Shown here: positions 956 through 64,000 of the stretch, in pieces | Layout: each line of letters starts with the position of its first letter | Position numbering within the stretch: the stretch's first letter is position 1 | Source: Podarcis muralis | Lineage: Eukaryota | DNA: 64,000 bases | Assembly (NCBI RefSeq): GCF_964188315.1 | Contig: NC_135667.1 | Coordinates: 11,346,001 to 11,410,000 of the forward strand | Direction: 5' to 3' | Translations under genes and position numbers: made by a program | The notes under the pieces: model-generated | The model's database searches: none | What the model was told of the DNA's origin: nothing | What the model saw: only the letters and a program-made list of their open reading frames with translations

Positions 956-3900
956 TAAAACACCCGCCCACCCCACTCACTCATGAAAACAACGCTCACC
1001 ACAGCCAATCACAAACGAGCAACCACAACCTAGGCCAACCCCAACCTCTATCACCACCACAGGAACACAAGCGAATAGCAAGAGAACCTACACGAACGAC
1101 GCTGACACAAAAGTCCAGCACATCCTTACGCCCACACAGCTGCAGCAGTTGCTCTAGTCAGTGGTTGGATAGGTAAACTCCGCATTGATCACTATCTTCT
1201 TGGGGGCAGAGCTGGCCCAAGACATTTTGGTGTCTGAGGTAAGCCACAAAACGGCATCCCCATCCTCTCCTGGCAAGAAGGAATGAGTGAAGATCTCCAT
1301 CAGGAACAAGTGGGTAATAAAGATCTGCATTGGGATCTGCTGCCCCTGTGGATCTTGCCGCCAGAGGTGGTTGCCTCACCTTGTCTCATGGGAGGGCCAG
1401 CCCTGCTTGGGAATCATGCAACACACTGTTATCTTCTATCCCTTTATTTTCCCCTTGTGGTGTAGGAACCTATTACTATGAGTTTGAATGCATGAGGATA
1501 TTACTTTAAATGCACCCATAGTTCTATATATTCTGCACCATACTAATCAATCTATTATTAAAAGATCATTTATTCTTTTGTAATAAACCAACTCAGTGGG
1601 GAACAGTCCAATTTGTGAGAGCTTATTTTTGGGCATGAGATAATTTGGGCCTATTCTCAGAGATGCGTCCAGTTGACTCTAGTAAAAGATCTCACAAGCG
1701 AGTTTGTTTTAGGGTTTAGGTAGGTTGCACACACACATGGGGATTTACACTTTTAGGACCTCATGTTCCTACATTGATACCAACAACATAAGTGAAACTA
1801 CAAACATCTCTGTTGATTACATATTTCTCTCTATCAGCTGCTCTCTATTGTTGAATTCAGGCCTTTCCAAAATAATGTAACTTTGTAAATTTAGTTTTTT
1901 AAATTCATATATCACTTAGTCAAAAAAATACTATAATACATATATTTTCTCTACTTCTCATTCATATCAGCTATCTAATCAGAATAGCTATAGAATAATG
2001 TTGATGTTTCTCTTTCTCTTTCGGAGTTTCAGTTTCTTGAGTTGAAGCTCATGTTTCCCTCATTTGGTCAGAATGGGCTGCAAAAATAACATGCAACCAT
2101 TTTGCAGTCCAGAAAAAAAGACAAAACTGCTGAAATAGTTTCATTTATTCTCATTTTTTGACGTTTCACTGTAGAATACAAAGAAAAACACCATGGGACC
2201 TCAAATTCTAATATTATTTATATCTTTCTTTGTATTAGATGTTCTCTGGTGTTCAGCTCAGGCCTCACTACAATAATGTAGCATTTGGGGAAAAAGATGC
2301 AAGCCAGTAATCCAGCACTAGAAGCCAAGATGGAGAAAATCTCCGCAGCCACCATGTATTTTCCTCTGATGCTCAGGTAAGTTGGAATAAAGGAGATCCA
2401 AACACTGCAGAAAACCAGCATGCTGAAGGTGATAAACTTGGCTTCATTGAAGCTGTCCGGCAATTTCCTGGCTAAGAAAGCCACAGCGAAGCTGAGAATG
2501 GCCAGAAAGCCCATGTAGCCCAAAACACAATAGAACATGAGGACTGACCCTTCATTACATAAGAATATAATTTCTTCACTCATTGATTGCATGTCCAAAT
2601 CTGGGAAAGGGGGAAAAGTTGTCAGCCAAAGACCACAAAGCCCTACTTGAATTTTAGAGCAGGAGAGGACAATGGAATAAGCCAGTTTTTTGCCTATCCA
2701 CTTCCTGATTGTGGATCCTGGCTTGGTAGCCATGAATGCCAAAACCACTGATATGGTTTTGGCCAAGATACTGGAGAGGGCCACAGAGAAGACGATGCCA
2801 AAACTTGTTTGCCGGAGTGGGCAGGTTGCCTCCTTAGGTGTTCCAATGAACATCAAGGAGCAGAGGAAACACAAGAGGAGGGACACAAGGAGAATGTAAG
2901 TGAGGCTTCTGTTATTGGCTTTGACGATGGCAGTGTCCCGGTGTTTAATGAAGATGCCAAACACTAGAGCTGTGATCAGAGACAACAGTAGTGCCGAGAA
3001 AGTTGAAATGATGGCCAAAGTTTCATCAAAGCCAAGAAAGTTTGGCATTTTAGGAATGCAATTATCCTGGTCTTGGTTAGGATACTTATTTGCTGGGCAA
3101 CTGATACATGTTCCCATGTCTGAAAAGACAAATGATTAGGAGAATTTGAAACTATGAAGAAAATTCTTAAGAATTTTTGTCATCAGGAGTTCACCTAGCT
3201 AATGTTCTTTACCGGTGTAGCTTTCAAAACTTCTAGCCCAAAGACTTTTGTCTGAGATATTTCAAAATTAATCTCAAATCTATATCAAATCTGGAATTTC
3301 TACATAGAATACATCTCTATGTGTTAGTGGTCCTCCTCCTCTTTCTTAGAATCACAAGCTGTTATAGTGAAATGAGAGCATTATCACAGCTAAAATCTTC
3401 TGAACTGAGAGAGGTCCACTGAATGAGACCTTCACTCTCTCCCCAAACTGCCTCCTTCTTAGAGAAGTGACCACCACTTCTATTCCATTGTAATTTAGTA
3501 GAATTTCCATGTAAAATGTATTACCTCCCTTTCTTCAGGATGTTTTAAAGATTATATTGCAAACAATGAGGACAATACAGACATCAAAATTTTAATCCTT
3601 TTGCCTCCATACTTTTAGTGACAACAAAAATTTAAGGACTTAAGAGTTGGCTAAATAAATGGTGTAGTTTGGTCTTAGCATGACATTTCTCACCCTTTTC
3701 ACTTGAGTATGTCCCGCTGGGACATGGATCACAATCATAGCAACAGAATTTACTTGTCTCCTTTTTTTTCTTCCCGTAACCAGGACGTCAGTTGTCATTA
3801 CATACTGACAGGGGTGGCACCTATCCAAATATATAGGAATAATTTAGTTTTTAATAAAATATTTTATGGGACTTAATCTAACACCAGGGGTCTATCAGCA

Positions 3901-16074: not shown

Positions 16075-19000
16075 TTATTTATATCTTTTTTGTATTAAAT
16101 GCTCTCTGGTGTTCAACTCAGGCCTCACTACAATAATGTAGCATTTGGGGAAAAAGATGCAAGCCAGTAATCCAGCACTAGAAGCCAAGATGGAGAAGAT
16201 CTCCACAGCCACCATGTATTTTCCTCTGGTGCTCAGGTAGGTGGGAATGAAGGAGAGCCAAACACTACAAAAGACCAGCATGCTGAAGGTGATGAACTTG
16301 GCTTCGTTGAAACTGTCTGGCAACTTCCTGGCTAGGAAGGCCACCGTGAAGCTGACAGTGGCCAGGAAGCCCATGTAGCCCAAAACACAGAAGAACATGA
16401 GGACTGAACCTTCATTACAAAGAAATATGATTTCTTCAGTCATTGACTGCATGTCCAAATCTGGAAAAGGGGGAAAAGTTGCCAGCCAAAGACCACAAAG
16501 CCCTACTTGAAGAATGGAGCCAGAGAGGATGATGGAATAAGCCAGTTTTTTGCCTATCCACTTCCTGATTGTGGATCCTGGCTTGGTAGCCATGAATGCC
16601 AAAACCACTGATATAGTTTTGGCCAAGATGCTAGAGAGGGCCACAGAGAAGACGATGCCAAAACTTGTTTGTCGGAGTGGGCAGGTTGCCTGCTTAGGTG
16701 TTCCAATGAACATCAAGGAGCATAGGAAACACAAGAGGAGGGAGATGAGGAGAATGTAAGTGAGGCTTCTGTTGTTGGCTTTAACTATGGCAGTGTCCTG
16801 GTGTTTAATAAAAATGCCCAACACTAGAACTGTGATCAGAGACAACAGTAGTGCCAAGAAAGTTGAAATGATGGCCAAAGTTTCATCAAAGCCCAGAAAG
16901 TTTAGTATCTTAGGAATGCAATTATCCTGGTCTTGGTTTGGATACTTATTTGCTGGGCAAGTGAAACATGTTTCCATGTCTGAAAAGACAAAATGAAATT
17001 ACGAAGAAAATTCTTAAGAATTTTTGTCACCAGGAGTTCAACTAGTTAATGTTCTTTACCAGAGTAGGTTTCAAAACTTCTAGTTCAAAGACTTTTGTTT
17101 GAGATATTTCAAAAATAGATCTCATGCATCAAATCTGGAATTTCTACATAGAGGACATCTCTATGTTTTAGTGGTCCTCCTCCTCTTTTTTGGAATCACA
17201 AGCTCCTCTGTAGTGAAAAGAGAGCAATATTACAGCTAAAATCTTCTGAACCGTGAGGGGTGCAATGAATGAGACATTCATTCTCTCCCCAAACTGCCTT
17301 CTTCTTAGAGGAGTGACCACCACTTCGATTCCATCACAATTTAGTAGAATTTGGATGTAAAATGTATTACCTTCCTTTCTAAATATTTTTTCTTCAGAAT
17401 GTTTTAAAGATTATATTGCAAACAATAAGAACAATTTAAAAATCCATTATTTAACCCTCCCCCACACCAGAATTTTAACGACAACAAAATTTTAAGGACC
17501 TCAGAGTTGACTAAAGAAATTGTGCAGTTTGGTCTATCGTAACATAACATTTCTCACCCCTTTCATTTGAGTACATCCCGCTGGGACATGCTTCACAATC
17601 ATAGCAACAAAATTTACTTCTCTCCTTCTTTTTCTTCTCGTAACCAGGATGGCAGTTGTCATTACATACTGACAGGGGTGGCACCTATCCAAAAATATTG
17701 GAAGATTTTTTTTTAAAAAAATGGTTGGGTGGTATTAACCTAACACCAGGTGATATATAAGGAATAGAAGGACCAATAGCGTGAAACATATGGTCCATAT
17801 TTGCACAGGTAGCACATACAATGGGATAAGAAGCAGCTGCATAGCATCATACAAACTCAAGAGGATTATAATGTTCATTTTAAGCCCAAGGAATGCTGTA
17901 ACAAGCTTAGCATTCTATCTGATGCCACTAACTGATGCCTCTCTTTCTTTTTTCTTTTCCTTCTCCTCCTGCAATGAGGCTACATTTTAATATTTTAATG
18001 TTCCATTATTTTAATGTTGTATTTTATTTTTGTTTTTAAGTTGTAATCATTCTTCTTGTTTTTATTATTGCTTGTAAGCCGCTCTGAGCCCGGCCTTGGC
18101 TGGGGAGGGCGGGGTATAAATAAAAAAAATATATTATTATTATTATTATTAACTGGAGATCTGCCTCACGTATTTCACACACTTTCTGATATCCATTGGT
18201 CCTTCTCAATGTTAGATGTCTTCTGAGCATGTTGCTCTTTTTTGTGTTGTGGTTCATTCGTTTATTTAATGATAGACCTTACAGTATTCCTTAAAGTATA
18301 TTGCTTATTCCTTGGTGGCTTACAAATATGCAATAAACAAAAATGGAATTTCTAAATCGTATACAATATAATATCACATACCAAGCAGAATGCAGTCAAC
18401 ATAAGCTGTTGGGTCTCTTAAACTAATGTGCAAGCATTTTCCCACAAGCAAAGCTAATGGTTCAAATAGAGATTCTCTCCATTAAAATACTATCCATCTA
18501 CATATTAATTTCCTCTTCTTAAAGTCTACTTTTCTCTCCCAGCAAACTTCACATTTAATCAGGTGCTAAGTGAAAAAACGCCTCCTTGTTTTCATTGCAT
18601 CTCATTTTATGTATGTTCCTATGTGATGCCAATAAAGGTTACTTGATTGAATGTTGGTATTTGAGAAATTAATTTCCTCACCTGAGTCAAGCCCCTGTGC
18701 CACTTAATCTGTCCATCATTAATGGTGAGCTCTTTCCCTGGAGGGGCCTGAGGATCCAGCCTTCCCACTTTGACCCTGATGTAGGATCTATTTGGGAAAG
18801 TGATCAAATTTGTAATATCAAAACCAGCTGCTAATTCTCCACATTCATTTAATGTAATTTCATCACCAACAGAGTTGTTGAATGAGATCTTCTGTAGGAA
18901 TGAGTGGAGCTAGGTGGAAAGAGAATCAAAAGGTCTATAAAGTATTAAAACATTCTGATTAAGATTGCTGAATAGCTTTTCTAGATGCATTCAAGCTCTT

Positions 19001-31935: not shown

Positions 31936-34900
31936 TTACATCTTTCTCCGTATCAGCTGCTCTCTGTTATTCAGCTCAGGCCTCACCACAATGATGTAGC
32001 ATTTGGGGGAAAAGATGCAAGCCAGTAATCCAGCACTGGAAGCCAAGATGGAGAAGATCTCCACAGCCACCATATATTTTCCTCTGGTGCTCAGGTATGT
32101 GGGAATAAAGGAGAACCAAACGCTGCAGAAGACCAGCATGCTGAAGGTGATGAACTTGGCTTCATTGAAGCTGTCCGGCAACTTCCGGGCTAAGAAGGCC
32201 ACCGTGAAGCTGATACTGGCCAGGAAGCCCATGTAGCCCAAAACACAATAGAACATGAAGACTGAACCTTCATTACAAAGAAATATGATTTCTTCCGTCA
32301 TTGAGTGCATGTCCACATCTGGGAATGGGGCGGAGGTTGCCAGCCAGAAGACACAGATTCCTACTTGAACAATGGAGCAAGAAAAGACAATGGAATAAGC
32401 CAGTTTTTTGCCCACCCACTTCCTGATTTTGGAATCTGGCTTGGTAGCCATGAATGCCAAAACCACCGATATAGTTTTGGCCAAGATACTGGAGAGGGCC
32501 ACAGAGAAGATGATGCCAAAACTTGTTTGTTGGAGAAGGCAGGTTGCCTCCTTAGGTGTTCCAATGAACATCAAGGAACAGAGGAAACACAAGAGAAGGG
32601 ACACAAGGAGAATGTAAGTGAGGCTTCTATTGTTGGCTTTGACTATGGCAGTGTCTTTGTGCTTAATGAAGATGGCAAGCACAAGAATTGTGATCAGAGA
32701 GAATAAAAGTACAGAGAAAGTTGATACAATGGCCAAAGTTTCATCAAAGCCCAGGAAATTTGGTCTCTTTGAAATGCATTGATCCTGGTCTTCATTTGGA
32801 TACTGACCTGCAGGGCACCTGACACATATTTCCATCTCTGTAAATACAATGTACAAGAAAAATGAAAGAACCATGATTATGTTAAAGGATTTTATTATCA
32901 AAAGAGGGGGAGATTTTTTGAAACCATACATAATTGTGCATAATTGCCAGTCAGTAAGGGGTTAAGAGACACAGGGCTGTAAATTTTTAGAAAAGATTTT
33001 GATATCACATCTTCACTTTTCCAAGAAGGGAGGAAGTACGTATTATTTCCAGATCCCTCCCCACCCCCAACCCCCAATAATATATCAAGCCATAATATAA
33101 GCATTCTCTCTTCCAGAAATTTAAAGGCAACAAAACTGCCCAGAATTTACTAAAATAAATTGTATAGTTTGGTTTACGCTAACACGGCATCTCTCACCCT
33201 TCTCATTTGAGAACATCTCATGTGGACATGGATCACAATCATAACAGCAAAACTTCTCCCCCTCCTTCTTTCTCTTCCCATAACCAGGACGGCAGTAGGT
33301 ATTACATAATGAAAGTGGTGGTTCCTTATATAGGATATGATAAGAAAATGTTTGGGGTAAATTAATCTAACATAAGGTGATTTATTAATAAATAATGTGA
33401 AATGTATAATTCATATTTACAAAGGTGACACGTCCTTTGGAAAAAAAAAAACTTTCCCTTTTCTTCCAGTGAAATACAAATTTAATTATGTATTAAGTGA
33501 AGAACTGCTTTCTTCCCCCTCTCACACCCCATCTTATTGGATAACTATGAATGTTGCCATTTGAGAGCCAGTGCAGTTATTTTCTCACCTGAGTGAAGCC
33601 AATGTGCCATTTGATTCTGTCCGCATTGATGGCGAGCTCCTTGCCAGGAGGGGCCTGAGGATCCAGCCTCCCCACTTTGACCCTGACATATGATCCATTT
33701 CGGAAAGTGACTAAGTTTGTAATATCAAAGCCAGCTGCTAACTCTCCGTATTCATTTAATGTGATTTCATCACCAGCACTATTATTGAATGAGATCTTCT
33801 GCAGGAATGAGTGGACCTAGATGAAAAGAGAACCACAAGGTCTATAAAGGCAGGGGACGGACGGGTGTGTGTGGGACTCCCTAGTCCTGAATGGAGCAAT
33901 TGCCCCCCTAAAGGTTGGGTTGTTAAGAATTTCCCAGACATATCCAGAATACTGCAGTCGGAGGTGCAGATAAATTCTGTGATACAGGTTACTGCAGCAG
34001 CTCCATCTCTACCTATGTTTCCTTGATTCTACATACACCAAGAGATAGCACTCCAGGCCTTCTCCTTAAACGTCACTGCTAAATGCCCCTGTTTGCAAGT
34101 CCTGTTCATGAACTTCTGCTTATGAGCTGCAAAAGAGACTGCAAGCAGTTAAGCAGAACTGAGTAGAAGTGCTTGTTTTCTTATCCATCGCTGTCACTCA
34201 GACCTTCTCCCCACCTCCCTCTGTGGTTTTTTTGTGGTATGTTGTATATTGGGAACAAGGTTACTCTTTCAAAATTGGTAACTCCTGCTTTTGCTTTTGA
34301 GGGTGATGGCAGCAGAGAGGCTGGTTAAAGGTTTGCAAGGCTTGGGTGGTTAAGGCAGACATTTGTGTGTTGGGGAGATTGCATATTTTCTTCTTTACCT
34401 GAGTTTAATACCACAAGGCAGCCAACTGGAGGATGTGCTTGACTTTCATTTTCTTTGCCTCCTGGAATCCCTGCATTTTACTCGTTCACTGTAGCATGAC
34501 CCCCCAACCCCCATAGTCTAATAGATTGGCTCTGTGTGCTGGAGTTACCGTGGAAACCAGAAATTTCCATGGACACTGCATCTGGTTTTGATAAACTACA
34601 GAAAGTCGCAAGGGTCATTTCAGACAGTTTGACGTGCACTCGACTTGGCCAATTTGTGCAGTAGGTAAGAGGAAAAACAGACAGGCACACTTAAGCCACA
34701 AGTTTCTTAACAAAATCCGTGTCCCCAACCAAAACCTGGTTCAGATTAATGTTACTGCCCACTGCCCCTATCGTATAACAATTGTCAGTTTAATTGCCAC
34801 TTGATATTTAGGACGACCCTTAGTTCTAACTGTATAAATTGCAGCTGTTATTTGAGAGCATCTTAAAAAGCAGAGACATCACCTTGCTGACAAACGTCCG

Positions 34901-40231: not shown

Positions 40232-41702
40232 TATCTGTCACATCACAGAATCATAGACTAGGAAGAGACCTCCAAGGTCATCAAAGTAAAAAAAACCTCA
40301 TTTATGGTCAGGCATCAATCCTCTTACTATAATACTTTGCTTTACACACACTCTCCTATGTAACATTGATCAGACACTTCCATCCACCCTACTAAGTGGA
40401 TATTTTGGGGAAATGAGGGAGAGAGTCATAACCATATCCAGATGTTGGGACCCAAGGCAATACAGTCTAACCCCTTTTGAAAAAACAAACAAAGAATGAA
40501 TCAATGTGGCATACATGAGGACATCTCTGCCATCATTCTCTCACTCTGAGGAAATACGTAATTCAGATGAATGACAGGATGGTCCCATCCATGTAAATTG
40601 TAAACCAATGATAGACAATGTTGTTCACTCTGAATTTTGCTGCATTACAGCTTCCTTCATCCCTGATAATAATGGTCTGTTGTAAACGGATGGAAGTTGT
40701 AGTCCAGCAACAGCTGGAGGGAAACAGATTGACTACCTCTGGTGTAAGGGAAAGTTTCTGGGGTAGAAATAGGCTTCCTCTCTGATGTGATCTTTATCTG
40801 CCAGGGATGTGTCATATAATAGATCCTTTTGAGTCTGGCGCACTTGCTAAGGCAAGAACCATGATTTCCCGACTCCTATGCAAACCTCACATCGGTCCAG
40901 AAATGAGATTCAAGGAGTTTAGATGTCCTGGTTCACCATGAGAGCTTTTAGATTGGTTTGAGGTGTGTCACATGATGCGTCATGTGATGCTGCCTGGCAT
41001 GTGCTGGGTAGGGGCGGAACACACAGAAGGCAATCTCTGTGCTTGCTCATCCCAGCCCCAGCCCGGCTATTGGGCTGCCAGACTGCTGGGCTGCAGCTGG
41101 GACGAGTGAAGCAAGATCATACATGCTTGCCCCAGCTACCACATGACTCCTGGGCTGCCAGGCAGAAGCTGGGGCTGGGGTGTGTAGAGAGCGCCCAGCC
41201 GTGGTGGGGCGTGGCATCCCCCTAAACATGGGGGAAGCTGAAGCCCTATACCTGGTGCCACTGATTGCTCTGAGTCCTTACCAGAGCAGAAAGTGAATCT
41301 CTTCATTGCCTAATTGCCTCCACCTGGTGGTCTTTAACTCCTTTAGTTTCTGGACTCACACAGCCAACCATATACACTGGTTTAGTTGCTAGTGCAATTA
41401 GGCAGAGTGTGAATAACAAGGCTTCAAAGTTGAACTGAAACACAATTAGCTTTTAATACAGGGTGCTTTAGTAATGTGGCAATAGAAACAATGACTGTGA
41501 AGAGATCTTTTTAAAAAAAGAATTTTATTTTAAAACAGTTGAGTAGTTAAACTGAAGAGCTCACAAATATAGCAAGACTCTTCCCAATAAACAGTGCCTA
41601 GATCTGTTCCTCGAATCAGACAACCTACTCTGCCTCACACTGCTATTTATATAGATCTTATTTCTCAACCTTCTCACCAATCAGAAGCATAGTAGAATTC
41701 TG

Positions 41703-43575
41703 GGGGACTTCCGGGTTGGCGCCATCGCCGAATGGCGGATTCCCTCCGAGCTCTGGAGGGAATCTGCTCGGCAGGGGTTGGGTTGTGCTGCGCCGGCGAC
41801 GCGGGGACCCTCAAAAACCATGGGCGCGGAAGCCCGTGGACCTGGTGACTCGGCGGGCACCGTTAGCGCCCCCGACCCGCGAAGGAGCCTTTTTAAAGGC
41901 TACGGAGCGGGTGACGGGGAGCGGCGCGGTGCTGTGAGTCTTCTGCTTCCCCTGCCAAGCGAAGCCGCATGCCATTTGATGGAGAGCGCTGACTTCTTCT
42001 TCTAAAAAATTGGACTAATTAGAAACAAGAACCCGTGAGTAATTGGGAAATTGGACTAAAAATCTTTTTTGGATTCGGTACGAGCGGGGGAGGTGCAAAG
42101 AGGAAGTCCGTCTCCCCCTAATTGTAAACAATTTAAAGCAAGGATTTGATAACTAAGGTCGAGTGAAGAGCCTTTCTTTATTGGAGAAAAATCATTAATT
42201 GCACGGATTGATAGTATAAGTAATTGTGCTGGAGGATGAGCTAACTTTTTGAGTGAAATTGCCACCCCCCCCCGGGACCGGGAGTGATCCGTGAGAGGAG
42301 CCTGCTGAGGAGATACAGAAAATTTTGACAGCTGTCAGATTAGCTGTCAAAGTCGGAAAAATAGAGAACTTTATTTCTGATGTTTTTGCTGGTTAAACTA
42401 GACACAATATAGTTACAAGTTGCTGAAAATAAGAAGGATTGAAACAAACTAACTTGACTTTTGGGCTGGAAAGTGAAAGGAATACCGAACAACCAGAATC
42501 CCTCTAGAGGGGGTTCAGGGACATTACAAGAATGGAAATAGGTTGGAAAATACTAGCTGACCTGGATGAGGTTGCTTTTCTCATGAGAAAGTTGCAAAAG
42601 TTGTATGAGCAAGGTCATGTTTTGTCTACAAGTGATGTAACTTCGAAGTCAATAGCAAATGTATCCACTGAGTTGGAAAAGGATTTGAGCTACAAAACCC
42701 AGGCAGCTGAACAAGAAAATGAACAAGAGGAACAGGAAGGAGGGGCTGCAGAACTGCAGAAGGCAAAGGAGAGCCGGAGGCCTGTCAACATGGATGAAAA
42801 TAAAGATTGGAAGAGGAAAATTTGGTTTGAACTTAAAAAGGAGGAATGGAAAGATCTCCTTTTGTGGGGATCTGAAGATCTATGGACCATAAAGTTGAAC
42901 AAGGTGGAAGTTGGAGCCTTTGGACTATTTGGACTTAAAACGATTAAAGAACAAGATTTTAGCTCCAACTTTAAACAGGGAGGTCTGGCTGGAAGGAACA
43001 TGGACATTATAGGGATAGTGCCCCTCCGAGAGCTGGTGTTAAATACAAAGGACTTACAAAGAAACGGGCAGAGAGGGACTGAGAGAGACTTGAGAGCCTC
43101 GGACGTGAGGTTGCCAGGCTGATAGTAGATGGATTAATGGATATTGGTTTGGGGATCGAAACCGGGGAAGGGAGGGTGGGGTTTGGAAATCCAAAGGGTG
43201 TCTGAATCTTTTTTTTTACATTTTTCTTCTTAATTTTTTGCTGTTATTAGTATAAAGATGGGGAATTCGTGGAAGGGAAATTGGGTCGACCTTAGGAAAA
43301 ATTTTAAGTATAAATGATTGATGTTTATAAGTTAAAAGTTGATATATAAATTGAATTAAATATAATAACAAATTAAGGTTAAAAATTTAGGGTTAAGAAC
43401 TTGTTGGATAAATATTCTGGACATGGAATACAAGAAGGGGAGGTGAGGGGAAGTTCTGGAAAGAAGTTACTGAAAATCTGGAATGTAATGAATGAATTAT
43501 TTTCTTTTTTTCTTTTTGTTTTTTGTGTATATATATTTTTGAAACTTTAATAAATATTATTTTAAAAAAAGAAGA
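41703..43575 (+). mobile_element. Non-autonomous L1-type retroposon with a single short ORF (HAL1-like), copy 1, full length
   Basis: 20-bp TSD agaagcatagtagaattctg (41683-41702 and 43576-43595); GC-rich 5' end ggggacttccggg; AATAAA at ~43549 followed by an A-rich tail; empty site at 53311-53331; second copy from 62256. Confidence 0.85.
42532..43122 (+). CDS. Uncharacterised 196-aa ORF of the HAL1-like element, copy 1
   Basis: Uninterrupted ORF with the same start (acattacaagaATGg) and stop (ccaggcTGAtag) context as 63118-63747; no RT or endonuclease motifs. Confidence 0.6.
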   Translation: MEIGWKILADLDEVAFLMRKLQKLYEQGHVLSTSDVTSKSIANVSTELEKDLSYKTQAAEQENEQEEQEGGAAELQKAKESRRPVNMDENKDWKRKIWFELKKEEWKDLLLWGSEDLWTIKLNKVEVGAFGLFGLKTIKEQDFSSNFKQGGLAGRNMDIIGIVPLRELVLNTKDLQRNGQRGTERDLRASDVRLPG

Positions 43576-44474
43576 AGAAGCATAGTAGAATTCTGCTTAG
43601 GTTCCCATTAGTCCAAACTGTAGCTGGCTCTCTTGTGTATTTTTATGTATCTCATAAGAAGCGTTTCAAGGAAACAATCATTATCCGAAAAACAAACACA
43701 AGATAGGTGACATCCATTCATGAGTAGAAAATACTTCCATGACAAGAGAAGGGAAGAGTCATAGCTCACCAGCATCTTCTTGTGCTGATGATCAAGCTGC
43801 AGGTTGAAAGAGACATTAGTCTTGTGGTGTGAGGTACAAGGCAGGGAGGAGAATTAGGAGGCATCTGGCTTTTAAAGTCTCTGGGGAAGACATACCTGAT
43901 GATCAGATATGTTTCAGAGTAAACACAGCTTTTCCAGCCTGGTGCCTGCTTCCAATTTTGCCTGATATCCGTCTCCAACAGCCCCAGATCAGTTTGCATC
44001 ATACAACCCAAACCAGAGCAACTCAACATGAGTTATCCAAAATCCTCCCAAATAGATTGAGCAACACTCTCACTCACTATAAGGCGGATTTTGATGTTCT
44101 CCTTTCCCTTTCCCCCTCTCTGCAGTTTTCTAAGAATTCCCAAAAACTGCTCAAGAGAGCTTCAGAACATCTTGGGAAAATATGGGGACCACTCGGTGTA
44201 TGCAGGAGAAGGAGAGTATAGGATGGTTATTGTACAATCAGACTTTCACTCATGCAATGCTGGGTATCACATATAGTTTTATTCCATCACAGAGTGTCAA
44301 TTTATTTCCACCAAATATGTTTGTATGCTGAATACAAAGAACATGCTAAAAAAATCTCTTATATTATTCATCTATTTTCAGATATCATTTCTCAGACAAG
44401 TACAGTGAAACTGAACCTGGCCAGAAAGAATACAGAACCTAAATCTCAAAATAAACGACAATCTCTTCTACCAT

Positions 44475-47400
44475 TTAAATCTTTCTCCGTATCAGTTGCT
44501 CTCTGTTGTTCAGGTCGGGCCTCGCCACAATAATGTAGCATTTTGGGGAAAAGATGCAACCCAGCAGCCCAGCACTGGAAGCCAAGATGGAGAAGATCTC
44601 CACAGCCACCATGTATTTTCCTCTGGTGCTCAGATAAGTTGGAACAAATGAAAGCCAAACACTGCAGAAGACCAGCATGCTGAAGGTGATGAACTTGGCT
44701 TCATTGAAGCTGTCCGGCAACTTTCTGGCTAAGAAGGCCACAGTGAAGCTGACAGTGGCCAGGAACCCCATGTAGCCCAAAACACAATAGAACATGGAGA
44801 CTGACCCTTCATTACAAAGAAATATCATTTCTTCAGTCATTGAGTCCATGTCCACATCGGGGAATGGGGGAGAGGTTGCCAGCCAGAAGGCACAGATTCC
44901 TACTTGAACAATGGAGCTGGAGAGGACAATGGAATATGCCAGTTTTTTGCCTACCCATCTCCTGATTGTGGATCCTGGCTTGGTAGCCATGAATGCCAAA
45001 ACCACTGATATAGTTTTGGCCAAGATGCTGGAGAGGGCCACAGAGAAGACAATGCCAAAACTTGTTTGTCGGAGAAGGCAGGTTGCCTCCTTAGGTGTTC
45101 CAATGAACATCAAGGAGCAGAGAAAACACAAGAGGAGGCAGAATAGGAGAATGTAGGTGAGGCTTCTGTTGTTGGCTTTGACTATGGCAGTGTCCCTGTA
45201 CTTAATGAAGATGCCAAGCACAAGAATTGTGATCAGAGAGAATAAAAGTACAGAGAATATTGAAACAATGGCCAAAGTTTCATCAAAGCCCAGGAAATTT
45301 GGTCTCTTTGAAATGCAGTGATCCTGGTCTTCATTTGGATACTGACCTGCAGGGCACCTGACACATATTTCCATCTCTGTAAATACAATGTACAAGAAAA
45401 ATGAAAGAACCATGATTATGCTAAAGAATTTTGTTATCAGAAATGTGGGAGATTTTATAAAACCAAACATAATTGTGCATAACTGCCAGTAAGTAACCCC
45501 TGTTAAGGGACACAGAGCTGTAAGTTACTATAAAGAGTGAGTCAAGCCCTTCACATTTTCTTCAATTCAGGCAGCTGTTTTTTTCTTTGTAGTTCCCTAC
45601 ACATGTTGGATTTTATTCTTAATTGGTATTCAGTAGTTATTACCCAACATGAACTCCACTTTGCATACTGTTTTTCACCCGGAAAAACTTCAAAAACCCT
45701 AGCCAGAATGCTTTCGCCCTAGATGCTTCACAAATAAACCCATGTTACAAATGTGGATAAGCTATATGTTTTCACTGGTGCTTTTCTTTTTTTCTCAGAA
45801 CGTCCAATACTGCATAGTTAAATGAGAGAAATATTACAGCTGAAATCTTGGGAGCAAGAGAGGTGATTTTGACAGGACTTTCACCCTCACTCCCCCAAAT
45901 CCTGCTCCTAAAGAAGGGGCCACCACTTCTATTCCACCCTAAGTTAGTCAATGTTGGTGGGAAAAGTCAAAACAGTGGTACCTCGCAAGACGAATGCCTC
46001 GCAAGACAAAAGGGTTTTTTGTTTTTTGAGCTGCTTCGCAAGACGATTTTCCCTATGGGCTTGCTTCGCAAGACGGAAACGTCTTGCAAGTTTGTTTCCT
46101 TTTTCTTAACACTGTTAATACAGTTGCGACTTGACTTCGAGGAGCAACTCATAGCACGCGGTGTGGTAGCCTTTTTTGAGGTTTTTGAAGACTTTGGTGA
46201 TTTTTGAAACTTTTCCAAAACTTTTCCAATACCGTGCTTCGCAAGACGAAAAAAATCGCAAGACGACAAAACTCGTGGAACGAATTAATTTCGTCTTGCG
46301 AGGCACCACTGTACCTCCCTTTCTAAAATATGTTCTTCCAGATTTGTTAAGGATAACATTATATTGATTTTATCTATAAACCAAGAGAATAATATATCAA
46401 GCCATAATTTAAACATTTTCTCTTCCAGAAATTTAAAGACAACAAAACTGTCCAGAATTTACTAAAATAAATTGTATAGTTTGGTATATGCTAACACGGC
46501 ATCTCTCACCCTTCTCATTTGAGAACATCTCATGTGGACATGGATCACAATCATAACAGCAAAACTTCTCCCCCTCCTTCTTTCTCTTCCCATAACCAGG
46601 ATGGCAGTTGGCATTACATAATGAAAGCGGCGGTTCCTATCCAAAGATATAAGAAAAGGTTAATATTAAGGAAATGTTTGGGGCAAATAAATCTAACATA
46701 AGGTGATCTATCAGTAAATAATGTGAAATTCATATTTACACAGGTGAAAAGTCCTTTGGAAGAAAACTTTCTTTTCCCTTCCAGTGAATTACAAATTTAA
46801 TTATGTATTAAGTGAGGAACTGCTTCCTTCCCCCACTCACACCCCATCTTATTGGATAACTATGAATGTTGCCATTTGAGAGCCAGAGCAGTTATTTTCT
46901 CACCTGAGTGAAGCCACTGTGCCATTTGATTCTGTCGACATTGATGGTGAGCTCCTTGCCAGGAGGGGCCTGAGGATCCAGCCTCCCCACTTTGACCCTG
47001 ACATATGACCTGTTTCGGAAAGTGACTAAATTTGTAATAGCAAAGCCAGCTGCTAACTCTCCATATTCATTTAATGTGATTTCATCACCACCGCTGTTGT
47101 TGAATGAGATCCTCTTCAGAAATGAGTGGACCTAGATGAAAAGAGAACCACAAGGTCTATAAAGGCAGGAGAAGGACAGTTGTGTGTGGGACTCCCCATC
47201 CAGAAGGGAGTAACTGTGTCCCTAAAGGTTGGGAGTCCAGAATTTCCGTAATCTCTAAAAATGTCCAGGGAAATCCGTACGTATGGCAACCCACATTGGT
47301 ATTGCTGTAATATTTTCTTTTTGTGCGAAATTGGCAAAAAAGCTCAATAACTCTTGGTAAAGCTTTTCTGTCTTGATTTTCACTGTTTGAAATATAGCAA

Positions 47401-53177: not shown

Positions 53178-54159
53178 GTTGGCTAAAACAATTCTAGTGA
53201 ACAGTGCCTAGATCTGTTCCGTAAATCAGACAAGCTACTCTGCCTCACAGTGCTATTTCTATACTTCTTATTTCTGTACCTGTATTTCTATTTCTCTACC
53301 TTTGGCCATTCTGAAGCATAGTAGAGTTCTGCTCAGGTTCCCATTAGTCCAAACTACAGCTGCCACTAGAGTTGCCCTACGTCAGGAATTTCCTGGAGAA
53401 ATAAGTGTCCAGTGAAATTAGTGTCCGGGAGGGAATTTTGGGAAATCTGCAAAATGTACAGGTTTTTGCCAATAGAACCAGGAAGTGTGTGTTTGATTAA
53501 TACCTGTGCTACTTCATGCTTCCTACCTTATTGTCTCTTTTAACTGTTTGTCTTTATTTATATCTCCTTTTATGTTTATGTGAGTAATAATCACTTTTAA
53601 CTATTAGCTTTTATCTCTTTCCTCTCTAAGTCCTATGTGCCTAATTTTATTTGCATGTTTTTATCATATGCTGGTCTGCGACCGTAATAAAATTTGATGA
53701 TGATGATGAGTAACACTTTTTGCCTTATTTGGGTGAATTCCTAAAACAGCTCAAAAGCTCAACAACCTTTGTGTCCAGATTTTTACTTCTTGAAATATGG
53801 AACCCAAGCTGACCCTCTTGTAGATTTTTATCCACTTCAAAAGAAGTGTACTACCGGGCTATAGCTCAGAAAAATCTTATTTTTTTATTAAAGATAGTAG
53901 TGATCAACCAGCAGATTGGAAGAGGCATCAATCCTGTGGTGTGGGGTACAAGGCATGGAGGAGACTCAGGAGGCATCAGGCTTTGACCTTCTCCATGGAA
54001 GACATAGTTGATGATCTGATAGGTCTCAAAGTACAAACAGGTTTTCCAGCGTGGTGCCAGCCTCCACTTCTTGCGTGATATCAGTCCCCAACAGCCCTAG
54101 ATCATTCTGTGCCATACAACCCAAACCAGAGAAAGCCATGGCTACTCCAACTCAATATG

Positions 54160-55205: not shown

Positions 55206-58200
55206 TTACATCTTTCTCCGTATCAGCTGCTCTCTGTTATTCAGCTCAGGCCTCACCACAATAATGTAGCATTTAGGGGAAAAGATGCAACCCAGCAGCC
55301 CAGCACTGGAAGCCAAGATGGAGAAGATCTCCACAGCCACCATGTATTTTCCTCTGGTGCTCAAGTATGTGGGAATAAAGGAGAACCAAACACTGCAGAA
55401 GACCAGCATGCTGAAGGTGATGAACTTAGCTTCATTGAAGCTGTCCGGCAACTTCCTGGCTAAGAAGGCCACAGTGAAGCTGATAATGGCCAGGAAGCCC
55501 ATGTAGCCTAAAACACAGTAGAACATGAGAACTGACCCTTCATTACATAAGAATATAATTTCTTCAGTCATTGAGTGCATGTCCACATCTGGGAATGGGG
55601 CAGAGGTTGCCAACCAGGAGGCACAGATTCCTACTTGAATCACAGAGCAGGAAAGGACAATGGAATAAGCCAGTTTTTTGCCTACCCACTTCCTGATTGT
55701 GGAATCTGGCTTGGTAGCCATGAATGCCAAAACCACTGAAATCGTCTTGGCCAAGATGCTAGAGAGGGCCACAGAGAAGACAATGCCAAAAGCCGTTTGT
55801 CGGAGTGGGCAGGTTGCCTTATTAGGCATTCCAATGAACATCAAGGAGCAAAGGAAACACAAGAGGAGGGAGATGAGGAGAATGTAAGTGAGGCTTCTGT
55901 TATTGGCTTTGACGATGGCAGTATCCCGGTGCTTAATGAAAATGCCAAGTACCATAGCTGTGATCAGAGAGAATAAAAGCACAGAGAAAGTTGAAACCAT
56001 GGCCAAAGTTTCACCAAAGCCTAGGACGTGTGGTTTCTTGGGAATGCACTGATCCTGCTCTTGATTTGGATATTGATCCGGAGGACATCTGGTACAGGTT
56101 TCCAACCCTGAAAAAAAAAGGTTGTATGGCTATTGGAAACAATCCAAAATATGCTTAAGGGTTGTTTTTTTGTTAAAAAAAAATCTGGAGTCCCCTTAGC
56201 ATATTGTTTCCACGAGGAAATATTTCAAAACTTCTAGTCCAAATGCTTGTGCTTTTGATAATTTGATTATAAAGTCATGCATGAAATCTGACATTTCCTA
56301 TATGGGGAAAATATGCTTTTAGAGATCCTCCTCCATTTTCTTAGAACCACAGATTAAATGAGAGAAATATTACAGCTGCAATCTTGGCAGCAAGAGAGGT
56401 GATTTTTATCAGATTTAAATCCTGTCCCCAAAGATCCTTGTTCTTAGAGAAATGTCCACCACTTCTATTCCATCGTTCCTTCCCCAAAGATAAGAGTTTA
56501 GTGTCTTCCAGGACAGAATGCATGTACAAATTTTATGTCTTGTTGCATCAAAAGAGAGGGGTGGATCTATACTCATGGTGTATATTGTTAAAATGTGTTA
56601 TTAAAATGTGGCAGCACAGCTGTGAGCCACTGTCAATGAGAAACTGCATTAAACATTAGAGAATGTTACGTAGATACAGCGATGGAAAAGCTTTACATTA
56701 CAAATTAGCTCACATCTTCATGGTATACTCTGTTGAAGGTTAAGATAATTTCTTCATAGTGGCATCTTTTACATAGACAGAAGGGTGATAATTCTACTAT
56801 TGTTAATAAAAAGATAAAGGACCCCTGACAGTTAAGTCCAGTCATGAACGACTCTGGGGTTGTGGTGCTCATCTCGCTCTATAGGCCAAGTTAGCCGACG
56901 TTTGTCTGCAGACAGTTTTTCTGGATCATGTGGCCAGCATGACCAAGCCTTCTCTGGCGAAACCAGAGCAGCACATGGAAAAGTTGTTTATCTTCTCGCT
57001 GGAGTGGTACCTATTTATCTACTTGCACTTTGACGTGCTTTCGAACTGCTAGGTTGGCAGAAGCTGGGGCCGAACAAGGGGAGCTCATCCCATCGCAGGG
57101 ATTCAAACCGCAACCTTCTGATCAACAAGCCCTAGGCTCAGTGGTTTAGACCACAGTGCCATCCGCGTCCCAATACTATTGTTAAGAAACAATATTAATT
57201 AAGACCCTACAAAGCAAACCTCATTGCCGATTTGCTCAGAATTTACTAAAATAGCTTGTATATGGTAATATGGCATCTCTCACCCTTCTCGTTTGAGAAC
57301 ATTCCATGAGGACATGGATCACAATCGTAACAACAGAACTTCTTCCCCTCCTTCTTTTTCTTCTCATAACCGGGAAGGCAGTTGGCATTACATAAGGAAA
57401 GGGGTGGCACCTATCCAAAGAGACACAAAGAAGTTAATATTAAGAAAATGTTTTAGGGGATTCTTCTAACATCAGGTGATCTACCAGTAAGAAGATTACA
57501 ATGTTCATACCTAGATTGACCATTGCTACAACCATCAGATAATTTGATCTCATACACTACTGGTTATTTCTTTTTATGGAACTACAGCCTCCTGCTCTTT
57601 GCTGCTGTAATTTCACTTGATGTCCCCTTAGTGAGCTTCAAGGAGTTGGGATTTGGAGGTAGTGAATTACTGTGGTGTTGCTCCTATCACTTATACCATT
57701 GGAAAAAAGAGAGGCAGCGAAGATGGTGCGCAGATGTATGGGGTTGTTAAGTTAATATCCCAATGGTACTTAACTTTACTTCATAAAAAACAGGGAACTA
57801 CAATACAATGTGTACATAAAATAAGTTGGGACTTTTTTAAGATCACAAAGAAATATATCCAACATTTTTCCAATGAACTTTTTAAAAAATATATGATTTT
57901 GCAGGCAACTAATGCTGACAAGCCTTGGACTGAATAAATCAGAAACATTTGTTAAACTATAGCAGCAAAGATCCTTTTAATACTCTCAATATATGCAAAA
58001 GAATATCTTGATACACAAGGAATTGGGAATGGGATTTAGCAAATATTTAGTTAACAATTCAGGAAGGAAAATAGATGTGGGCATTAAAACGTTCCAAAGG
58101 TGTTTATTAGTGTGAATCGGAAAGAGAACACTCTTAAGTTAATATCCCAATGGTACTTAACTTTACACAGAATTGATTGATTGATTGATTGATTGAGGTA

Positions 58201-62255: not shown

Positions 62256-64000
62256 GACTTCCGGGTTAGCGCCATCGACTAATGGCGGATTCCCTCCGAG
62301 CTCCAGAGGGAATCGGCTCTGTAGGAGACGGGTCCTGCCGCGGCGACGACACAGGGACCCTCAGAAACTACAGGCGCTGAAGCCTGTGGACCTGGTGACT
62401 CGGCAGGCACCATTTGCGCCCCCCAACCCGCGAAGGAGCCTTTTTAAAGGCTTCGGAACGGGGGATGGGGTGAGCGGCGCGGTGCTGAGAGTCGACTGCT
62501 TCTCCTGCGGAGTGAAGCCGCATGCCATGGTCGGAGAGCGCTGACTTCTTCCTTTGAACAATCGGACCTCAAAATCAACAACCCGTGAGTAGTACGGAAA
62601 TTGGACTTCAAAGGAAAAATTTTTGAAAGGAAATTGGACTTGAAAGGAAAAATTTCTCTGAATTTGGCACGATCGGGGAAGGCGCAAAAAGGAAGTCCGT
62701 CTCCCCGTCCTGTAAAAAATTCAAAGCAAGGAATAGATAACTAAGGTCGAGAGAACTTCTTCTTCTTTATTGGATAAAAGCCATTAATTTCACGATTTGG
62801 CAGTATAAGTAATTTTACTGGAGGATAAGAGCCAATTTTGAGAGCTGAAGCGCCACCCCCCCGGACCCGGGAGTGATCCGCGAGAGAGCCTGTTGAGGAG
62901 ATATAGAAGAGTTTGACAGCTGTCAAATTAGCTGTCAAAGCTGAAAAAAGAGAACTTTGTTTCTATTGTCTCTGCTGGTTATATTTGTTACAATTTAGTT
63001 ATAAATTGTTGAAAACAAGGAAGAACTGATACAAACTAACTTGACTTTTGGTTTTGAACTGGAAGGAATATTAAGCAACCAGAATCCCTCTAGAGGGGGT
63101 TTTCGGACATTACAAGAATGGCTGAAGGAGGAAAAATTCAGGCTAAATTGGACAGAGTGTTTCTTCTCTTGGGAAAGTTACAAGGCCAAAGTGATGTTTT
63201 GGCTACAAATGTTGCAACCCTGAACTCAACAGTAAATAAACTCATTGAATTTGATAAGGACTTGACTCAGGAAGTTTATGCAGCTGGACAAGAAGACAAA
63301 ATTGAGAACATTGAGAGAGTGGAGAAAGAGATATATGTTGTTCCAGAGGAAAGGGAAGGAGGAGCTGCAATGCTGCAAATGACAAAGGAGAGCCAGAGGC
63401 CTGTCAAGATGGATATAAAAGAAAATAAGAACTGGATGATGAAAATCTGGTTTGAGCTGGAGAATGAAGAATGGAGAGATCTCCTTATGGGGAGATCTGA
63501 AGACCTATGGATTACAAATCTGATCAAGGTGGAAGCTGGAGCTTTTGGGACATTTGGACTTAAAAGGGGCAAGAAACAAGATTTGGGCTCCACTTTTAAA
63601 TATGGAGGTCTGGCTGGAAGAAACATGGACCCTATCGGGACAGAGCTTCTCCGAGATTTGGTGTTTAATATAAAGGACTATCAAAAAAACCGGCAGAGAG
63701 GAATTGAAAGAGAATTAAGAGCCTCGGACGTGAGGTCTCCAGGCTGATAGCAGATAGACTAGTCAATGGACACTCGTTGGGGATCAGAACCGGGAAAGGG
63801 GTGGGGTGGGGTTTGGGAATCCAAAGGGTGTACAATTATATTCTGTTTCTTTTTATTCTGTTTTGTTATTAGTATAAAAATTGGGTAATTCGTGGACGGA
63901 ATTTGGGTCGACTTTAGAAAAGGGTTTTAAGAATGAGCACTGACGTACAAATATTGATGTTTATAAGTTAAAATTGGTTAACTAAAATGAATTAAATATA
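62256..64000 (+). mobile_element. HAL1-like single-ORF retroposon, copy 2 (3' end beyond the window)
   Basis: Collinear with 41703-~43360 from gacttccgggtt through the ORF into the 3' UTR. Confidence 0.82.
63118..63747 (+). CDS. Uncharacterised 209-aa ORF of the HAL1-like element, copy 2
   Basis: Intact ORF; N-terminal heptad-like pattern (L18, V22, L25, V29, L32); ~66% identical to copy 1 over the last ~110 aa (hand count). Confidence 0.6.
   Translation: MAEGGKIQAKLDRVFLLLGKLQGQSDVLATNVATLNSTVNKLIEFDKDLTQEVYAAGQEDKIENIERVEKEIYVVPEEREGGAAMLQMTKESQRPVKMDIKENKNWMMKIWFELENEEWRDLLMGRSEDLWITNLIKVEAGAFGTFGLKRGKKQDLGSTFKYGGLAGRNMDPIGTELLRDLVFNIKDYQKNRQRGIERELRASDVRSPG

Follow-up and report, generated by a model that had tools for sequence, protein, structure and literature searches.

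What kind of mobile element leaves an L1-style insertion of less than 2 kb that contains a single intact open reading frame (ORF) of about 200 codons and nothing else? We have analyzed two such elements in a stretch of 64,000 nucleotides of Podarcis muralis (NC_135667.1, positions 11,346,001 to 11,410,000; this whole stretch is referred to here as the window). The first, copy 1, lies within a cluster of vomeronasal type-2 receptor (V2R) genes, and the second, copy 2, near the right end of the window. A reading made earlier from the DNA letters without database searches (the sequence-only reading) had proposed that they form a non-autonomous family encoding its own protein. That proposal holds, in that other lizards have elements of the same layout with target-site duplications (TSDs) of their own, and the ORF is under purifying selection. 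We consider it highly probable that copies 1 and 2 are members of a non-autonomous retroposon family that derives from a lizard L1 and carries a truncated, remodelled ORF1. "HAL1-like with truncated, remodelled ORF1" is a fair label for the family.

Copy 1 occupies positions 41703-43575 (1,873 nt) and is bounded on both sides by a perfect 20-bp TSD, AGAAGCATAGTAGAATTCTG, at 41683-41702 and 43576-43595, with 20 of 20 letters identical. All the parts named by the sequence-only reading are present: the 1.87-kb unit, the 20-bp TSD, a GC-rich 5' end (65-67% G+C in the first 300 nt of the insert, as against 33-40% in the flanks), one ORF, the polyadenylation signal AATAAA (43549-43554) and an A-rich tail. 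The element proper opens at 41706 with GACTTCCGG; its longer start sequence, GACTTCCGGGTTGGCGCCATCGCCGAATGGCGG, follows directly on three G residues that form the 5' junction of the insert. Extra G residues at the 5' end are read as untemplated and cap-derived in full-length L1 and processed-pseudogene insertions, and by this analogy those at 41703-41705 may have the same source. Coding capacity for a reverse transcriptase or an endonuclease is absent from the 1.87-kb element, in which the longest ORF has 196 codons and no Pfam domain was found; the remaining ORFs of copy 1 are short (50-105 aa, on both strands).

Two forms of the target site that lack the insert were found. The target sequence occurs once, unbroken, at a paralogous position in a neighbouring V2R unit (53312-53331). 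In addition, a 504-nt contig from DNA run X1, which bears the same species label, joins position 41682 straight to 43576 with the 20 letters in common, and skips exactly 41683-43575. This contig has single-copy depth (34) and its flanks are 97-98% identical to the window. Because of these two uninterrupted sites, the duplication flanking copy 1 can be taken as a true TSD, and since the paralogous unit holds an intact target, the insertion of copy 1 is later than the V2R duplication. The empty form in X1 is an allele that lacks the insert, or else a very recent duplicate that lacks it; copy 1 is young in both cases, as the perfect TSD also suggests. The 20-bp TSD, the polyadenylation signal and tail, the extra 5' G residues and the two independent empty sites support copy 1 as a real retroposition by an L1-type mechanism. 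The TSD, the tail and the empty sites thus agree with the sequence-only reading, which had ascribed the insertion to target-primed reverse transcription (TPRT) by the L1 machinery.

The second copy, which the same reading had traced from 62256 with an ORF at 63118-63747, is confirmed, and its ORF is open over 209 codons. It starts with the same GACTTCCGGGTT motif as copy 1, for which there are 2 matches in the window versus 0.00 expected by chance. The two copies align from first base to last and are 75-82% identical, with p-distances of 0.18 in the 5' untranslated region (5'UTR), 0.23 in the ORF and 0.25 in the 3'UTR. Their proteins are 55% identical overall (E 9e-69). The gaps between the two ORFs measure 9, 42 and 6 nt, or 3, 14 and 2 codons; they had been described from a manual alignment as in-frame gaps of about 3, 13 and 2 codons, of which the frame stands and the middle length needs correction. 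The flanks of the two copies are unrelated, which makes them independent insertions from different subfamilies. The alternative that one insertion was segmentally duplicated to yield both copies was rejected, the flanks being non-homologous and the paralogous V2R unit being without the insert. No L1 fragment and no further family copy was found in the window by tblastn with L1 pieces or by nhmmer with the family profile.

The family extends well beyond this locus. A profile search of 1.8 billion representative proteins returned 11 clusters at 50% identity, and a second search found more; about 25 distinct relatives of the ORF are present in other lizard samples. Almost all of these are nameless ORFs on Logan contigs of 1-1.9 kb, and two are 'hypothetical' proteins of Podarcis lilfordi. 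Contig L002 (1,865 nt) has the same layout as the window copies, beginning about 30 nt into the 5'UTR and holding the ORF and 3'UTR, and contig L005 terminates in a run of 14 A residues followed by unrelated flank. A P. lilfordi copy with a broken ORF (L003:4930-6720) starts with ACTTCCGGG, ends in poly(A) and is flanked by TAACTGTTTCTATC and TAACTATTTCTATC, its own 14-bp TSD with one mismatch. In sample ERR14654793 there are three subfamilies, all with open ORFs, whose proteins fall into separate 50%-identity clusters. To judge by these sequences the family is old: one genome contains several subfamilies that diverged deeply, and Podarcis too has members. The family also appears to be still inserting, or recently active, because copy 1 is missing in another individual or in a 97-98% identical duplicate. 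Another P. lilfordi locus (L004:1501-4690, from OX395126) contains two members that are nested or adjacent, the second starting at 3151, about 60 nt past the stop codon of the first. From 3151 onward no TSD could be read at this locus, the ORF and 3' end of the second element being rearranged after ~4515.

A rough idea of abundance comes from run X1. The word depth there, summed over contigs and not to be read as a copy number, is 34 in the flanks, ~1,200 in the middle of the ORF, 6,000-27,000 in the 3'UTR and ~114,000 in the first 120 nt of the element; for the ORF segment it amounts to roughly 35-800 times the flank depth. Of 1,582 contigs placed, 555 are at least 99% alike. By the depths in X1, the ORF-bearing unit is present in tens to hundreds of repeats at 95% identity or more, and its termini are common to far more elements than the ORF-bearing unit itself.

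Both ends of the element point to L1. The lizard 'clade 1' L1 families have a long 5'UTR with two CpG islands that is conserved across divergent families, and their 5'-terminal consensus is GACTTCCGGTGN8ATGGCG (Boissinot & Sookdeo 2016, PMC5381506). Both window copies and the Podarcis copies open with GACTTCCGG...AATGGCGG, which fits this consensus. The comparator used here is an internally deleted L1 of P. lilfordi (L003:1349-3486, from OX395132) with a clade-1 5' terminus, a 3'UTR and poly(A). Its ORF1 N-terminus ends ...KEKQTNLRIR, where it is fused to a C-terminal piece of ORF2; the P. raffonei model P0027 (LOC128406054), which continues NLRIRALPE, shares 63% identity with this ORF1 part. 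An nhmmer nucleotide profile built from eleven family members matches L003:1371-2240 over profile positions 10-829 (E 4.6e-71), that is, over the whole 5'UTR, and the nucleotide homology to L1 ends ~25 nt past the family's ATG. The last ~200 nt of the element align with the 3'UTR of the same L1, down to TTAATAAAtATTATT-An, and blastn of the element's 3' part against L1 gives 77% identity over 52 nt (E 3.8e-05). Longer A tails are found in the L003 and L005 copies, and the sense strand of the element is purine-rich, as in L1. A search for ends shared with an L1 had been proposed by the sequence-only reading; the homology of the whole 5'UTR and of the last ~200 nt to a Podarcis L1 supports the derivation of the element from L1. 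In both L003:1349-3486 and P0027 the N-terminus of ORF1 is fused in frame to ORF2 fragments, and one of the two is an NCBI uncharacterized protein-coding gene.

The ORF of the family is located at the position of ORF1 and encodes 170-215 aa, about half the length of L1 ORF1p; the protein had already been called much shorter than a typical ORF1p. An alignment of 19 members has four parts: a conserved N-terminal segment, an acidic linker rich in indels, a W-rich block that is present only in some subfamilies, and a C-terminal tail, ...KDYQQNRxRGTERDLRASDVRxPG (copy 1 pattern ...KDxQxNxxRGTERDLRASDVRxPG), which is conserved and reaches the stop codon. None of the 19 members matches Transposase_22 or Tnp_22_trimer at E<=1. 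Pfam scans of both window proteins and the 19 members gave scattered sub-threshold matches, none of them common to more than one member, and the family profile had no L1 ORF1p match, nor any relevant one, among PDB sequences at E<=10. Searches of the ESM Atlas with both window ORFs returned low recognition scores and no usable lead; in the same resource the N-terminus of P0027 weakly resembles LINE-1 ORF1 clusters. Since there is neither a Pfam nor a PDB match, the protein is judged to have neither the RNA recognition motif (RRM) nor the C-terminal domain (CTD) of ORF1p, as the sequence-only reading had suspected. Both domains are RNA-binding and are thought essential for ORF1p function. The same reading had described the N-terminus as looking like a coiled coil. 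Two observations agree with this, and the support is limited to them: strong hydrophobic residues recur at a spacing of 3-4 over ~36 N-terminal residues and are conserved across the 19 members, and AlphaFold2, run with the 19-sequence alignment, predicts one confident helix at residues 2-33 (block-mean predicted local distance difference test, pLDDT, of 75-90). Elsewhere the model mostly stays below 50; its mean pLDDT is 50 and its predicted template modeling score (pTM) 0.20, and it has no globular domain.

Where did this protein come from? A bridging element of P. lilfordi (L004:1501-3150) has a 5'UTR that matches the family profile (E 3e-85) and a frameshifted ORF whose two pieces resemble different proteins. 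The N-terminal piece is 36% identical to residues 56-135 of L1 ORF1p (P0027; BLASTP E 1e-08), in an alignment that runs on to the ...KEKQTNLRIR region, while the C-terminal piece matches the family profile from just after the W-rich block to the final ...RDLRASDIRLPG (hhalign 96% probability, E 1.3e-09). From this collinearity it is probable that the protein originated from ORF1, and the most likely ancestor of its N-terminal helix of ~36 residues is the coiled-coil part of L1 ORF1p. The RRM and CTD are replaced by a family-specific, largely disordered C-terminal half with an almost invariant basic tail.

A different history can be written for the same element, in which an L1 'chassis' captured an unrelated ORF, from a host gene, from another transposon or de novo. 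The element would then be a composite in the manner of SVA/LAVA, and the L004 intermediate a template-switch recombinant. Such a capture would account for the end of L1 nucleotide homology ~25 nt into the ORF, for the 19 members unmatched by Transposase_22 and Tnp_22_trimer, for an hhalign comparison of the family profile with two L1 ORF1p N-termini that was not significant, and for the N-terminal ORF part of L004:1501-3150 that the family nucleotide profile leaves uncovered. However, the ORF sits in ORF1's place, directly after the homologous 5'UTR, and the L004 copy follows ORF1p collinearly in its N-terminal part and the family from the W-rich block as far as the stop codon. Moreover, the coiled-coil region of ORF1p is reported to be extremely variable in vertebrates (PMC5381506), so that a loss of similarity is to be expected, and no host protein or other family matches the ORF in Pfam, in the PDB or among the 1.8 billion representative proteins. 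We regard capture as rather unlikely, and descent from ORF1 as the better account of the ORF.

It could also be supposed that there is no lineage and no functional protein at all, and that these are sporadic L1 internal deletions, dead on arrival, whose ORFs are open by chance. Internally deleted L1s do exist in lizards, L003:1349-3486 and P. raffonei P0027 being examples, and the sequence-only reading had named such derivatives as the finding that would count against it. Yet all 3 indels between copies 1 and 2 that fall in the ORF are multiples of 3 in length, compared with 1 of 17 in the UTRs (Fisher P=0.0035), and in 20,000 trials of random substitution at the observed divergence, an open ORF with an intact ATG survived in 0.1%. 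The pairwise ratio of nonsynonymous to synonymous substitution rates (dN/dS) among ten ORFs is 0.37-0.75, with bootstrap upper limits <1 in 6 of 7 pairs tested. Pairwise distances also contain the neutral decay that follows insertion, so these values understate the constraint in active lineages. The ORF is a genuine gene, on which purifying selection acts as long as a lineage remains active. The same layout and ORF, furthermore, recur within the one window in subfamilies that differ by 18-25%, and again in other lizards, and the C-terminal half of the ORF is not found in the available L1 pieces. With the recurring layout, the in-frame indels and the dN/dS values all against it, sporadic deletion is very improbable. 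Still less credible is a host gene family, possibly domesticated and spread by retrocopying, with the copies as processed pseudogenes or retrogenes: it would fit a conserved ORF under purifying selection across lizards and the two P. lilfordi members annotated as hypothetical proteins, but its 'mRNA' would have an L1 5'UTR from the first base and an L1 3' end, several 50%-identity clusters coexist in one sample, the summed depth is tens to thousands of times that of the flanks, at least one insertion is missing in another individual or near-identical duplicate, and no intron-bearing parent was seen, with no genome search made for one.

Constraint on the ORF goes together with rapid change. The ORF, above all its first third, diverges faster than the 5'UTR (67-71% versus 74-89% identity in 100-nt windows), so that the alignment gives the picture of a fast-evolving protein in a conserved non-coding frame. 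Between copies 1 and 2 the element diverges most at 42506-42705, where identity is 67-71% and the reading frame is kept. In some pairs the dN/dS of the linker nears 0.9-1, and diversifying selection in the linker is possible.

The favoured reading, a family derived from L1 with a remodelled ORF1, can be extended to a working model. The L1 5'UTR, which the element keeps from the first base and which is presumed to be an internal promoter, would drive its transcription; RNAs that are capped and full-length would agree with the uniform 5' ends and the extra G residues found there. The RNA would be polyadenylated at AATAAA, and ORF2p supplied by autonomous L1s would copy it at a nicked target by TPRT, leaving TSDs of 14-20 bp and an A tail. 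ORF2, with its endonuclease and reverse transcriptase, has been lost, and the one ORF of 170-215 aa in ORF1's place would have begun as ORF1, with the start and the coiled-coil part kept and everything from the RRM onward lost or replaced. As a best guess, the protein would probably be required in cis, where it would act on its own RNA, either multimerising through the helix or joining L1 ORF1p assemblies, and so give this RNA access to ORF2p. A bolder version, which we put forward only tentatively, sees the family as long-lived parasites of lizard L1 in which ORF1p has been stripped to an oligomerisation helix and joined to a new conserved disordered C-terminal module, hijacking ORF2p by co-assembly with ORF1p or by replacing ORF1p on the RNA of the element itself. 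If this were so, it would be a hijack at the protein level, unlike the strategies of Alu and HAL1, and the protein might be a dominant-negative brake on L1; the fast divergence of the interior of an ORF that stays open would then be the trace of an arms race against L1 or host restriction factors.

Several points weigh against these conclusions in one part or another. Besides the hhalign comparison mentioned above, descent from ORF1 hangs on one intermediate copy, which could be recombinant. The L1 comparator is an internally deleted P. lilfordi copy and not a full-length L1 of the window's genome, and a search for a full-length lizard ORF1p gave only P0027, another internally deleted L1 model. 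A trimer prediction with three copies of residues 1-66 (score 0.02) gave no verdict and speaks neither for nor against binding. The database proteins were ascertained for being open, a bias of which the window pair is free. The X1 depths are sums, as noted, and the flanks of the 'empty allele' in X1 differ by 2-3%, so that it could be a very recent paralogous duplicate and not an allele. Finally, 30-54 RNA reads per ~12.7 million were placed on the element, and all are 95-99% alike to it and hence from related copies. None lie in the flanks, most match only partly, and some cross the 5' boundary 41705/41706 into other loci, which indicates read-through; the reads are strand-biased, and it is the library chemistry that decides which strand is sense. 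A claim of element-driven transcription of the sense strand was dropped on this account, the RNA-seq reads being too few and too ambiguous. The RNA-seq support that the sequence-only reading had proposed to look for thus amounts to a few reads from relatives, with no reads from copy 1 and read-through in some. In RNA runs X23, X24 and X37 the reads on 42744-42911 and 43416-43499 have ~10 differences from copy 1 that are common to all three runs. This points to one related copy or tight subfamily as the putative source of the transcripts in all three samples, with strong strand bias.

The features of the locus are listed in Table 1.

Table 1. Coordinates of the two family members and of related features in the window
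Feature	Position	Strand	Remarks
Left target-site duplication	41683..41702	+	AGAAGCATAGTAGAATTCTG; identical 20-mer at 43576-43595
Three extra G at 5' junction	41703..41705	+	missing in copy 2 and the Podarcis copies
5'UTR, lizard L1 'clade 1' type	41706..42531	+	presumed internal promoter; GACTTCCGGGTT...AATGGCGG at start; CpG-rich first ~300 nt; conserved inverted repeats
ORF, 196 aa	42532..43122	+	N-terminal heptad helix, acidic linker, W-rich block, conserved C-terminal tail to stop
3'UTR	43123..43563	+	G-run motif near stop, then AT-rich; last ~200 nt homologous to L1 3'UTR
Short A-rich tail	43564..43575	+	AAAAAAAGAAGA; abuts right target-site duplication
Right target-site duplication	43576..43595	+	same 20-mer as on the left; X1 contig joins here
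Paralogous uninterrupted target site	53312..53331	+	neighbouring V2R unit, intergenic; flanks 88-92% identical
Copy 2	62256..64000	+	different subfamily, cut by window end; nhmmer score 1499.8
Copy 2 parts	5'UTR 62256-63117; ORF 63118-63747; 3'UTR start	+	ORF of 209 aa, open
7tm_3 exons	2218-3117, 16075-16977, 31936-32931, 44475-45470, 55206-56105	minus	ANF_receptor exon follows upstream of each

The window is a tandem array of about five V2R genes on the minus strand (2218-61000), each with a 7tm_3 and an ANF_receptor exon. Compared with the 7tm exon at 44475-45470, those of the remaining four units show 85-91% identity. Copy 1 sits between two V2R units and copy 2 lies beyond the last unit.

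The non-coding parts of the element contain several conserved motifs. An inverted repeat near the 5' end (41733-41765), GATTCCCTCC-N-GGAGGGAATC, has equivalents in copy 2, L002, L003 and L004, and its arms co-vary in the Podarcis L1 (ATTCCTC / GAGGAAT). Possible readings are a hairpin, in RNA or DNA, and a palindromic site for a binding factor. Further conserved palindromes are TTTGACAGCT...AGCTGTCAAA (~42318-42346) and CCCTCTAGAGGG (~42501-42512), the latter a short way upstream of the ATG. A G-run motif, GGGGAAGGGAGGGTGGGG, with four runs of at least three G, is found at 43164-43181, ~40 nt past the stop codon, and is kept in copy 2 (~63790-63815), in L002 and in the Podarcis copies; it has the form of a G-quadruplex. 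Non-mammalian L1 3'UTRs are without the mammalian G-rich tract, according to a cited review.

It is mainly in mammals, as HAL1, that non-autonomous L1 derivatives with a retained gene are known. In the lizard family a short ORF has stayed under selection in deeply diverged subfamilies and across lizards, despite the loss of the RRM and CTD. Should mobility depend on the protein, it would represent a minimal module that opens the L1 machinery to the element, perhaps a coiled coil and a short basic tail; if it is not required, translation alone can be selected in a retroposon. L1 families in lizards are generally said to have few copies, and in this setting the present family looks abundant. Its insertions, one of them inside the V2R cluster, might serve as polymorphic markers. 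Gene predictions in lizard genomes include family members and chimeric L1 fragments as 'hypothetical' or 'uncharacterized' proteins. No HAL1-like family of lizards was found in the literature searched; Repbase and Dfam were outside this search, so the family may already be catalogued there as an unclassified or L1-like repeat.

Among known systems, the SVA/LAVA elements of hominoids are likewise non-autonomous and mobilised by L1, measure 1-3 kb, have TSDs and poly(A) and are polymorphic. They are non-coding composites of unrelated repeats, whereas the lizard element is L1-derived at both ends and has a selected ORF. With Anolis L1_AC and the clade-1 L1s the family shares the GACTTCCGG...ATGGCG motif, a long CpG-rich 5'UTR, a purine/A-rich sense strand, an AT-rich 3'UTR and the presence of several old lineages in one genome. 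It differs from them in being ~1.9 kb long rather than ~6 kb, in having no ORF2 and no recognisable ORF1p domains, and in its shorter 5'UTR (~830 nt, compared with an average of ~1.3 kb in Anolis clade 1). At the protein level the likeness to L1 ORF1p consists of an ORF that follows an L1 5'UTR, an N-terminal heptad helix and one member with similarity to the ORF1p N-terminus; the family protein differs in having no RRM, CTD or Pfam match and in being predicted mostly disordered.

The closest parallel is HAL1 of mammals, described as non-autonomous L1 derivatives that encode only ORF1p and have arisen several times (Smit 1999; Bao & Jurka 2010, as cited in PMC5753468). So far as that citing account goes, the two have in common the loss of ORF2, one ORF at the ORF1 position, amplification as a lineage of their own and, presumably, the use of ORF2p in trans. 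The independent origins of HAL1 were repeated, so that an origin in lizards fits the pattern. If HAL1 is defined by the lack of ORF2 and propagation as a distinct lineage, the lizard family has both properties. Under a strict definition that includes a complete ORF1p (coiled coil, RRM and CTD) it falls outside. HAL1 as there described encodes ORF1p, whereas the lizard protein, about half the length of ORF1p, is without RRM and CTD; this squamate family keeps at most the coiled-coil part, joined to a C-terminal half of its own.

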